DNA of 62,899 nucleotides, filler included, from Choristocarpus tenellus KU-1152 (lineage: Eukaryota > Protista > Phaeophyceae): assembly GCA_964200185.2 (NCBI GenBank). It is 9 parts of 9 records of this genome, joined end to end, with 100 filler letters (N's around TTAATTAATTAA, not from the genome) between each part and the next. Parts side by side here need not be neighbours in the genome. Positions count along the whole stretch, not along the records: positions 45,486 to 51,512 come from CAXNAD020009137.1; 8 more parts are not named here. The stretch is one strand, 5' to 3'. Every line of letters begins with the position of its first letter. Position 1 is the stretch's first letter. Below, one piece after another: positions 45,100 through 48,588 of this stretch. The notes beneath the pieces are model-generated. The model was not told the DNA's origin. It made no database searches and saw only the letters and a list, made by a program, of their open reading frames with translations. The translations under genes and the position numbers were made by a program.

Positions 45100-45525
45100 T
45101 CATTGGTGGATTGGTTAAGACAGCTTAGTTCCCACCTTGTGGAAAATGTAACCGTCAAAGCCACTTGTGTTACCCTATGTGTTGAAACCAGAATCGAATG
45201 CATCGTACACGTAAGCAAAATTCGTGGCTACGAGTGAAGAGGAATCATGGTGTTGCAAAGCACCGATGAGTAAGCTGCGTAGTCTGTGTTGTGAGTAGAT
45301 ATGCTTGTGCTGCAAAGCACCGATGTATTTATTCTGTTGCAATTGAAGTCATTGATCTCTCAGTCAAGAATGATGTGATGTGAATNNNNNNNNNNNNNNN
45401 NNNNNNNNNNNNNNNNNNNNNNNNNNNNNTTAATTAATTAANNNNNNNNNNNNNNNNNNNNNNNNNNNNNNNNNNNNNNNNNNNNGGGAAGGAAAATGTT
45501 TGAAAAGGGAGGGTGGGGGGGGGGG

Positions 45526-45569
<44 letters not shown>

Positions 45570-46402
45570 GGGAAAGGCAGAGCAGAGGAAGGGAGGGTAG
45601 ATGGAACAGGGTTCACTTTGGGGTGCTTAAGGAGAGGGCTTTCAATACAAAGAGGCCTATGCAATACTACAGGCACGTAGGTGAGGGTCAAGATGTTGAC
45701 TGATCAGAGACAGTTCATGCCCTATCCCTTCCCTAATCCTGGGCTTTCCTTATACCCCTCCCCCCCTGCCAGGTGTTGATAACATGCACTCCCTCTTACA
45801 TACGGGAACATGGGGGCAGGATGAGGGAGGTAGGCGTAGTACACTAACCAATCGATCTTGCATCCAATCCAATCCAATAATACATACCTCTACGAACAAG
45901 TCAAATGCTCTCCAATCCCACCCTGGAACAAATGCAGACAACCCTAACCCTAAACCCTTCGGGCAATACATGCACATGTCCACACTCCAGCACGCACACA
46001 CACACACAACACACAGTGCTCACAAACCACAAAGCCAACTAAATTGTTGAGAAACCCATGGTCTCTGCCTTCACCCCCTCCTTGCCTCCTGGCGACTACA
46101 GTACAGCTTGCCCACACTTGCTGATAATGTCGCAGAGACATTTATTCATCGCTTTGCTTGCCCTGGGAGATTTCTTATGAAACGATGTTGAAGTTGTCTC
46201 GAACTATGTGTTACTCCAATGAGGTACCACCCCAGTGTCTCATCCTGTACTGAAACGATCTCTCCTCTACGGTGTTAATTAATCCACCATAATGTTAATT
46301 AATGCACCATAATGTTAATTAATGAAATACGCAGCAAACTACAGGCAACCAGACCCATTGCTATGCAATATGCTCCCCTCCCCTACCAACCAATGCACTT
46401 AC

Positions 46403-48140
46403 TGTTGGACCTGGCGTGCATCAGCCAAGGCAGCCCCTAGAATATCGCTGAGATTGCTGGACCTTAACCCTGTGCCACTAAGAACAGGATGAACCTCCCA
46501 AGCTTTGCCAACACCCAGTTCCTATGGTGCATATGTTGGGCAGGCATGGGGGCAAGGGGCATACATTAGGGTGCAGGCTCACAAGGCTGAGTGAATCACT
46601 TCAGACACCCATGGTCTCTTTGCATGCAAGCTCGAAATCTATCACAGAATTGCGAGACTGACCAAGCAAAGGATTTGGCCGGGGTTGGGGCAGAAGAAGC
46701 TGGTGTGATAAGGGGTACGGGAGCCTCTATAGAAGGGTGAATTCTTCCACGTAGTTAATTGTCTTCTCAAGTAAGAAGTTAGCTATGATTGTCCACTGTA
46801 GTGTTGGTACTCGTTTTTAGACTCACTGCAGCATGCTCACAACATACCATTTTCAAATTTCCTTTGTCTGCTTCTGATAGTGCCACTCCTACCTGAACCA
46901 CATTTCTCAACCTACCAATGGACAGTTGCACACTTTTACAGACACGCCTGTAGTTCAAGAGTATGATCCCACTCAGTCTCTGCATACTTTTTGAGGAGGG
47001 CTAGGTACTGATGGACTTATTAAGCCTCCTTACAAGAGCCCCCACTCCACTCTAGCGCAGAAGGTAGTTTGGTGCTATCACATGTTTGACAACAATCTTC
47101 CCCACTAGGTGAAGGTACACTGCCAATGTGTGGTCATTTATGCACTTCTTAGAACTCGGAGCTAATGTAAAAGTCATCCCAACTCACCTCCAGCAACCTC
47201 GACACATCCTGGGTTGCAGTGGGGGGGGCATAGAGTAAAACCTTTCGATACTCTTGTCTTGTATCCTGCAACAATGACAATTGTGTATAGCGCACAGCAG
47301 CAGGAAGGACAGAAGTTGTCATCCAGTGGGGTGGAGATTGAACACTGGTAGTCAGCGATGAATTGGGCGTGTGGCATGTGGATGGGTAGTCGAGGGAGCA
47401 TTAAGCTCGCGAGGCGCATGGAATATGCCCAAGGCGGTCTCAAGGGGATACAAGAAGGTGGTTTGGTTGCAAATACATTTCAGCCAAGTCTTATGCTTCA
47501 TATGTTGACTCTTTGAAAAAATATTAACTGCATACGGAGATTGCGCTACGATATTCACATTTTACCAGAGGGAGAGAGCGAAAAAGGGCCTAGGAAAATA
47601 GGGCAGGAAGACACACGACAGTCCCAAAATCAGAAGAGACCCTTGTTGTCATGTGCCAAAGAGGACACAAATGTGGAGAAGAATAGGGACAGGATTGATC
47701 AGATGTCCCTGAACGGAGGTACCATTCAAATGCTGGGGAAGACAATGAAAACGATCTCCCAGTGAGGGAGCACTACAACCTCACGTGAGAAGCGTTGTAG
47801 CAGGTCGGTCAACATGGACATAGCTAATTCTGCGGCAAGGTCTACCCCAAAGGCCGGAATGAGGCGCGTCTTCGACGACCCTTGACTGGGGTATTTCGCA
47901 ACTGGATTATGGGTTCAGGTCGGGGAGATGGGGGACAGGGCGAAGGAAAGAGGCGAGGGAGGTTAAGGCATCAATATCATGTCATGTATGCTTTTGGGAA
48001 ATATCATTAAGGAGGAGGATATCTTTCTCGACATACGGCATTGCGGCACTAGGAATCTGTAACAGCAGAAGATATAACACACCTAGGATAAGCGTGGCGG
48101 CCTTTTCGTGCACATCTACGACATTCTGAGCTTCATCCAT
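46403..48140 (-). CDS. DUF2064 / TIGR04282-like GT-A glycosyltransferase (arsenosugar-biosynthesis-associated family); first 4 exons, 3' end missing
   Basis: GT-AG exons 48140-48083, 47901-47780, 47265-47188 and 46521-46403 splice without stops to MDEAQNVVDVHEKAATLILVAKYPSQGSSKTRLIPAFGVDLAAELAMSMLTDLLQRFSRE|DTRQEYRKVLLYAPPTATQDVSRLLE|ELGVGKAWEVHPVLSGTGLRSSNLSDILGAALADARQVQ. LILVAKYPxxGxSKTRL matches the family signature (LIIFAKxPxPGxVKTRL), and NLSDILGAAL matches DLGxRLxxA. Confidence 0.85.
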
Positions 48141-48588
48141 GAGGTGCCCTGGTCTGTCTGTATCAGTGGTCGTGGAGTGTGGATACGCTTCGAGCAAAAT
48201 AAGCAACCCAATCTTGAGAAGGAATCAGCAGTAACGAGAAAGCAAGATGTGATATATCAAGAGGAAGGACTCCACACACTAGAGGATTACTCCTTCGGTA
48301 CTCGTTCCTGCCTTGTGTTTCAACTACTACAACCAGTACAACAAAGATTCAAGAAATGTGGGATAACAACTCATGTGAACCTAACGAAAAAACTACTATT
48401 TTTGCATAGTACTCCTTCGAGTTTGCAATACCGGGGGAGGCTTCTATAGGAATCTTAAAGTAGAGTAGATCGCAACACCATCGCAACACTACTGTTAAAA
48501 CGACTTGCTCAGCGTAGGCATACACAATACAAGTACACAGAACGATAGATCGAAAGGTGATCCTGGATAAGTCCACCGCTTGCATAGG
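48141..48588. promoter_or_regulatory. Putative bidirectional promoter / shared 5' region
   Basis: 448 bp, with no repeat recognised, separate two divergent start codons. Confidence 0.55.

Follow-up and report, generated by a model that had tools for sequence, protein, structure and literature searches.

The window analysed here is a stretch of 62,899 nucleotides from the brown alga Choristocarpus tenellus KU-1152 (GenBank assembly GCA_964200185.2), made up of nine parts of nine records joined end to end, and all positions count along it. The piece at 45486-51512, from record CAXNAD020009137.1, carries on its minus strand the 5' half of a gene whose product resembles the DUF2064/TIGR04282 family, next to a plus-strand gene of the Hid1/Dymeclin superfamily. 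By frame reading and a phase check, four GT-AG exons were joined in frame into 377 nt (125 codons plus 2 nt). This agrees with a preliminary description of this DNA, which had proposed four such exons in correct phases and a protein start of about 125 aa, and 46403-48140 proved to be the exact coding span. We regard it as almost certain that these four exons are the expressed, correctly spliced 5' half of a host nuclear brown-algal gene of this identity.

All features of the gene lie on the minus strand. Its 5' untranslated region (UTR) covers at least 48141-48373, as one contig of sequencing run X3 (record 15) spans 48083-48373 and is spliced to exon 2. Reading of this sequence found no ATG in the UTR at 48141-48373, so 48140 is the first start codon. 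The coding part of exon 1 (48083-48140, 58 nt) opens with the ATG and holds 19 codons, with one further base that begins a split codon. Its product is an acidic, variable N-terminus with no signal- or transit-like stretch apparent by eye. Intron 1 (47902-48082, 181 nt, GT..AG, with CT..AC ends on the plus strand) is skipped in X3 at the joint 48083/47901. The codon split by this intron, G+TT, restores the valine of L-I-L-V-A-K-Y-P-S-Q-G-S-S-K-T-R-L. Exon 2 (47780-47901, 122 nt) encodes a nucleotide-binding-type loop, K-Y-P-x-x-G-x-x-K-T-R-L, followed by the first helix. Intron 2 (47266-47779, 514 nt, GT..AG; X3 joint 47264/47779, cut moved by +1) separates it from exon 3 (47188-47265, 78 nt, 26 codons), which holds the second beta-strand region (R-K-V-L-L-Y-A-P). 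After intron 3 (46522-47187, 666 nt, GT..AG; X3 joint 46520/47187, cut moved by +1) comes exon 4 (46403-46521, 119 nt, 39 codons plus 2 nt), which contains N-L-S-D-I-L-G-A-A-L and ends CA/GTAAGT. Entry phases for exons 1-4 are 0, 1, 0 and 0; the donors are, in order, GTGTGT, GTTGTA, GTGAGT and GTAAGT, and all acceptors are AG. Of intron 4 the piece covers 45568-46402, which includes a tandem repeat (20-bp unit, about 2.6 copies) at 46274-46325.

The locus was present in three public runs of one study, none of them recorded as RNA, and their contigs were mapped on 45600-50380. Run X1 gave a single collinear genomic contig over the locus, ending inside a poly-G tract near the left edge of the piece. 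Contigs of run X3 join 48083-47901, 47780-47265 and 47188-46521, and the stretches skipped have minus-strand GT..AG ends; two introns of the plus-strand neighbour are skipped as well. As its contigs skip five GT..AG introns in all, we infer that X3 is transcript-derived. The splice junctions proposed earlier thus held when checked against transcript-type contigs, with all three introns skipped. X3 also has low-depth unspliced contigs: record 14 (47238-47808) crosses intron 2 and suggests that some RNA is unspliced, and another, at 48683-49139, crosses intron 1 of the neighbouring gene. These could be pre-mRNA, retained introns or DNA carry-over.

Record 13 of X3 leads out of the piece. Its match ends at 46403, after which 107 nt are found nowhere in the piece. 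In minus-strand reading, following the CA with which exon 4 ends, its last 30 letters give Q-E-G-A-V-I-F-V-G-M-D. An IGxDxP motif had been expected next in the protein, and the V-G-M-D of this continuation answers to it. The start of exon 5 as seen in X3 occurs nowhere in 45486-51512, so exon 5 and later exons lie beyond the long poly-G tract at the left edge (45513-45567), and the piece carries only about 46% of the protein. A run of N's (50389-50398) and poly-C tracts (near 50330-50470) lie further to the right. These tracts are probably homopolymer or assembly breaks, which would account for the absence of the 3' exons here.

To assign the product to a family, the exons were searched singly, one by one. 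Among NCBIfam models the exon 2 segment matched TIGR04282 at 27.5 bits (E 2.3e-6, profile positions 5-43 of 189), with CofC trailing at 12.5 bits (E 0.081). In a Pfam scan the exon-bearing segments had no match; the DUF2064 model spans approximately residues 109-201 of P0003, a full-length orthologue from Logan, and these fall mostly in the missing exons. Against a local DUF2064 hidden Markov model (HMM), exon 3 matched with E 0.02 and exon 4 with E 1e-5. When 1.84 billion protein representatives were searched with exon 2 by phmmer, 15 matches at E<=1e-3 were returned. The best of these, and the nearest named relative, was CAM9796199.1 from Discosporangium mesarthrocarpum (85% identity, E 1e-12); another was CAM9215314.1 from Sphacelaria rigidula. 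A word search with P0003 added Pylaiella, Ascophyllum, Ectocarpus and Hapterophycus, and every one of these entries is an 'unnamed protein product'. Between exon 2 and its counterparts in other brown-algal orders identity is 73-85%, and a locus search of bacterial genomes with the exon 2 segment alone found no relatives.

The Discosporangium, Sphacelaria, Pylaiella, Ascophyllum and Ectocarpus entries are orthologues with the same exon borders. Exons 2, 3 and 4 are contiguous on P0003 (residues 33-73, 74-99 and 100-135), and the borders are common to the Sphacelaria (L001) and Discosporangium (L002) loci. Each of these entries belongs to a different species from the one analysed here, and none has been annotated or studied. 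Several of their models are incomplete or translate across introns; in several relatives the genomic gene call runs through the intron directly after '...R-F-S-x-E'. The orthologues are thus already public but unnamed, in a family that is known but uncharacterised, and we found no mention of DUF2064 or TIGR04282 in algae in the literature.

The relevant cut-offs are 25.8 bits for Pfam PF09837 (DUF2064, gathering), 134 bits for TIGR04282 and 105 bits for CofC. Full-length eukaryotic orthologues passed Pfam DUF2064 at 46-56 bits, whereas brown-algal and other eukaryotic orthologues reached only 77-97 bits against TIGR04282. On these full-length orthologues, the HMM check proposed in the preliminary description thus came out above the cut-off for the Pfam family and below it for TIGR04282. 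Its choice of this family over CofC was borne out both by exon 2 and by the orthologues, which scored 21-36 bits for CofC/FbiD (TIGR03552, PF01983) and always below their TIGR04282 score. The N-terminal loop of TIGR04282, K-x-P-x-x-G-x-x-K-T-R-L, is present in exon 2 as A-K-Y-P-S-Q-G-S-S-K-T-R-L, and the invariant or near-invariant N-terminal columns K, P, G, K, T, R and L are all found there (alignments A1, A2 and A5). Across 70 sequences the K, R, L, the D of G-x-D-x-P, and D-G-G are invariant. As in TIGR04282 and DUF2064 proteins, the orthologues carry both G-x-D-x-P and D-G-G-Y in a core of about 190 residues; they differ in having extra N- and C-terminal tails, and the algal gene differs in being eukaryotic and intron-bearing and in belonging to a clade of its own. 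Judged by these profile matches and motifs, the gene encodes a eukaryote-type member of a DUF2064/TIGR04282-like family.

The neighbouring gene, HID1, lies on the plus strand at 48564-49922. Its exons at 48589-48711, 49235-49339 and 49770-49922 each match Pfam Hid1, and the introns between them (48712-49234 and 49340-49769) are those skipped in X3. The product begins M-G-S-S-S-S-K, which resembles an N-myristoylation-type start. HID1 and the DUF2064 gene stand head to head. The innermost X3 contig ends (48373 for the minus-strand transcript, 48564 for the plus-strand one) leave an intertranscript region of at most 190 bp (48374-48563, assigned to neither strand), which is presumably a shared bidirectional promoter. 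The Discosporangium locus shows the same pairing with a Hid1/Dymeclin gene; it was not found on the eukaryotic contig L007, where a UGGT-like gene adjoins. Given its introns, the conserved positions of these introns and the HID1 synteny, the DUF2064 gene is a host nuclear gene and not a contaminant, in agreement with the earlier claim that it is host-integrated. Elsewhere in the piece, a direct repeat of about 36 bp lies downstream of the HID1 exons (50960-51040), and short interstitial telomere-like repeats occur at 45940-45958 (CCCTAA/CCCTAAA) and 51317-51338 (TTAGGG, three times). Other X1 contigs match solely these two telomere-like stretches.

Two quick IQ-TREE trees were computed on biased samples and carry limited weight. 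In these, the brown-algal sequences formed one clade (support 99), nested in a eukaryote-type group (Shimodaira-Hasegawa-like approximate likelihood ratio test (SH-aLRT) 91) that has a long stem branch and no bacterial sequence inside. Members of this group include the pelagophyte Chrysophaeum taylorii (P0175), the fungus Cryomyces antarcticus (P0180), and MMETSP, EukProt and metagenomic entries. The contigs of the metagenomic members carry plainly eukaryotic genes (UGGT, Urb2, NDUFA12, SET and MPC), and in compact eukaryotic genomes from metagenomes (L007, L168 and L169) the DUF2064 gene has no introns. All 19 genes adjacent to the radical S-adenosylmethionine (SAM) enzyme gene arsS fell in a separate clade (SH-aLRT 96), and Actinomycetota formed a third (support 99). 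Backbone support between the three clades was only 72.

Linkage to arsenic genes was examined in the bacterial relatives. Among 80 metagenome loci from a family-alignment search, a radical-SAM gene adjoined the DUF2064 gene in 20, and in 7 of the 28 loci flanked by 3 kb or more of sequence on either side. Four of these neighbours were scanned, and all were ArsS by TIGR04167 (380-440 bits). One metagenome contig (L126:5633-9323) carries a compact operon of arsM, arsS and a TIGR04282::TIGR04283 fusion, which makes this locus a good bacterial reference for biochemical work; upstream of the operon lie genes for a YHS-domain (seleno)protein and an ECF sigma factor. The ArsS-linked bacterial genes scored 204-222 bits against TIGR04282 and Actinomycetota genes 152-154 bits. 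A genome scan with alignment A1 gave Actinomycetota only and is thus a biased sample (80 loci, L008-L087). None of these 80 Actinomycetota loci had ArsS within 8 kb, although their proteins pass the TIGR04282 cut-off. Passing TIGR04282 does not therefore imply ArsS linkage. The conserved Actinomycetota cassette (e.g. L004:6028-11002) comprises an unknown protein of 427-442 aa, a GT2 glycosyltransferase, the DUF2064 gene, a beta-propeller protein and a molybdenum oxidoreductase, and its GT2 fails TIGR04283 (42.6 vs 182 bits). The family name 'arsenosugar biosynthesis' looks over-extended for this clade. Co-occurrence with ArsS and ArsM, which had been stated for the family at large, was confirmed for the ArsS-linked bacterial clade but not for Actinomycetota. 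Two fusion proteins were also seen: P0274 (442 aa), which joins DUF2064 to a SAM-methyltransferase domain, and P0253 (400 aa, 24 member sequences), with CofC, NUDIX and DUF2064 matches in one protein. These fusions may hint at the substrates of the DUF2064 family.

The fold was assessed on orthologue P0003 and not on the fragment in the piece. An AlphaFold (AF2) model built with a 70-sequence alignment had a predicted local distance difference test score (pLDDT) of 90.7, and Foldseek placed it in the Rossmann-like alpha/beta/alpha fold of glycosyltransferase A (GT-A) enzymes and nucleotidyltransferases, which is also that of TIGR04282. Its best PDB match was the DUF2064 structure 3cgx from the bacterium Desulfovibrio desulfuricans G20 (E 9e-14, template-modelling (TM) score 0.69/0.80, 23% identity), a putative nucleotide-diphospho-sugar transferase with no assigned function. 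Exon 2 aligns with residues 11-49 of 3cgx, although the sequence match is weak (E 0.077). Next came the CofC/FbiD guanylyltransferases 6bwg, 7p97 and 2i5e (E 3e-10 to 1e-7, TM 0.53-0.62 by query), followed by the sugar-1-phosphate nucleotidyltransferases GlmU, TarI, KdsB and RmlA at about E 1e-5. CofC/FbiD enzymes act on 2-phospho-L-lactate, phosphoenolpyruvate or 3-phosphoglycerate and are the nearest family with demonstrated chemistry, the transfer of a nucleoside monophosphate (NMP) to a phospho-acid. A K-x-R-L type loop and acidic motifs are common to both families, but by score the algal gene is not a member, and brown algae are not known to have any link to F420. Every top-ranking structural neighbour whose activity is known is a nucleotidyltransferase.

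We propose that the protein is a CofC/MobA-like enzyme with a nucleotidyltransferase (GT-A) fold. In this proposal the exon 2 loop, P-x-x-G-x-x-K-T-R-L, would hold a nucleoside triphosphate, while a metal would be bound by acidic residues in two motifs, G-M-D-x-P (exon 5) and D-G-G-Y (in a later exon). The NMP would then be moved onto a phosphorylated small molecule, giving a nucleoside diphosphate derivative (NDP-X) and pyrophosphate. The K-T-R-L loop, which we take to be like the G-x-G-T-R-L loop of sugar-1-phosphate nucleotidyltransferases, appears together with G-x-D-x-P and D-G-G-Y to fit NMP transfer better than attachment of an aglycone. On the modelled fold, nucleotidyl transfer is the chemistry we slightly favour. 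The protein is probably cytosolic, since its N-terminus has no signal- or transit-like stretch. One speculative candidate for the substrate would be a 5-dimethylarsinoyl-ribose phosphate. Taken together, an expressed eukaryote-type DUF2064 gene encoding a predicted cytosolic nucleotidyltransferase is in our view the probable explanation of the locus.

Several points weigh against this explanation. The proposed chemistry rests on structural neighbours at 17-23% identity and on the model of an orthologue, and no demonstrated activity of any DUF2064/TIGR04282 member was found in the literature. The catalytic acidic motifs lie outside the piece, and V-G-M-D alone is recovered, from the 30-letter loose end of an X3 contig. 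The run type of X3 is unrecorded ('?'), its RNA nature being deduced from the five GT..AG skips, and the cytosolic location was judged by eye.

The locus could also be read in other ways. That it is not a functional host gene, but a bacterial contaminant, a pseudogene or a set of chance open reading frames (ORFs), has next to no probability. Only the N-terminal half is in the piece and one X3 contig retains intron 2, but the gene has four spliceosomal introns and spliced transcripts, its eukaryotic HID1 neighbour is kept in Discosporangium, and the conserved N-terminal residues are all intact, with exon 2 well conserved across orders. On the strength of the spliced transcripts, the HID1 synteny and the intact residues, we discard both the contaminant and the pseudogene reading. 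That brown algae recently acquired the gene from bacteria by horizontal transfer, or that it is of plastid origin and its product acts there, is very improbable. The family is mostly bacterial, with thousands of bacterial relatives and the Pfam title 'conserved in bacteria', and horizontal transfer has given brown algae about 1% of their genes (bioRxiv 10.1101/2024.02.19.579948). However, the brown-algal genes nest with the pelagophyte, the MMETSP and EukProt entries, the compact eukaryotic contigs and the fungus, on a long stem and with no bacteria inside the clade, and several introns are common to brown-algal orders. Exon 1 shows no visible targeting presequence, and the backbone support of 72 is too low to name a donor lineage. 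Since members of the clade come from several eukaryotic lineages, a fungus among them, a transfer, if there was one, would be old and not specific to brown algae. A brown-algal-specific transfer thus appears unlikely from the tree, and the possible horizontal or endosymbiotic acquisition suggested in the preliminary description was weakened as a brown-algal event.

That description had also cast the protein as the enzyme that attaches the aglycone. A true Leloir-type glycosyltransferase, joining a sugar to an aglycone, would suit the JGI label 'glycosyltransferase A (GT-A) superfamily protein (DUF2064 family)' and the label 'nucleotide-diphospho-sugar transferase' carried by 3cgx and the Cryomyces protein, and a few Leloir glycosyltransferases do occur low in the Foldseek list (e.g. 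COLGALT1, E 4.5e-5). It is nonetheless improbable, and aglycone attachment is not the likeliest chemistry: the nearest characterised fold relatives are nucleotidyltransferases, and the K-T-R-L loop presumably resembles that of the sugar-1-phosphate enzymes. In addition, bacteria have a separate GT2 (TIGR04283) beside the gene or fused to it, and this enzyme would itself do the glycosyl transfer. A division of labour in bacteria, in which TIGR04282 activates the substrate and TIGR04283 transfers it, is possible.

Seaweeds store their arsenic mainly as arsenosugars, compounds that are relevant to food safety. To our knowledge, the only enzymes assigned to arsenosugar synthesis are ArsM and ArsS, both in a cyanobacterium; no assignment of a later step, or of any step in a eukaryote, was found in the literature. 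The algal protein could act in algal arsenosugar biosynthesis after ArsM and ArsS, on a dimethylarsinoyl-ribose or -adenosine intermediate, although we consider this unlikely. The NCBIfam title of TIGR04282 is 'arsenosugar biosynthesis glycosyltransferase' (formerly 'rSAM/selenodomain-associated transferase 1'), and bacterial members do adjoin ArsS and ArsM, as in the L126 operon and the 20 of 80 metagenome loci. Arsenosugars are abundant in brown algae (PMC11009773), and Ectocarpus is reported to have an AS3MT/ArsM homologue (PMC5398495). The product of ArsS is 5'-deoxy-5'-dimethylarsinoyl-adenosine (PMC13598754), with later steps not described in the literature found.

By contrast, the eukaryotic proteins score far below the ArsS-linked genes and below the TIGR04282 cut-off, and in both trees their clade lies apart from that of all 19 ArsS-adjacent genes. 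Actinomycetota proteins pass TIGR04282 with no ArsS linkage, and the eukaryote-type clade includes the rock fungus Cryomyces. No ArsS-like ORF was found in the piece or in six eukaryotic loci, where clustering is rarely to be expected of eukaryotic genes, and the eukaryotic gene is not known to adjoin, or to be fused with, ArsS, ArsM or TIGR04283. A profile of 15 ArsS sequences returned at least 8000 candidates, bacterial and masking any eukaryotic matches, and an Atlas look-up gave bacterial clusters only. No report of ArsS, DUF3641 or TIGR04167 in algae was found in the literature. A more specific form, in which an old DUF2064 branch belonging to eukaryotic algae would be the missing activating enzyme and would convert a 5-dimethylarsinoyl-ribose phosphate, formed from the ArsS product, to NDP-arsenoribose for GT2 transfer to glycerol-type aglycones, is a little less likely still.

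The gene is thus a reasonable but weakly supported candidate for the open arsenosugar pathway. Two cautions apply: the eukaryotic branch stands apart from the one linked to ArsS, and the fold points to nucleotidyl transfer. Brown algae and many other eukaryotes nevertheless express a conserved, intron-bearing relative of an arsS-adjacent bacterial family, which provides a concrete candidate for knock-out. If the proposed activating role were true, brown algae would offer the first genetic handle on the formation of arsenosugars in a eukaryote.

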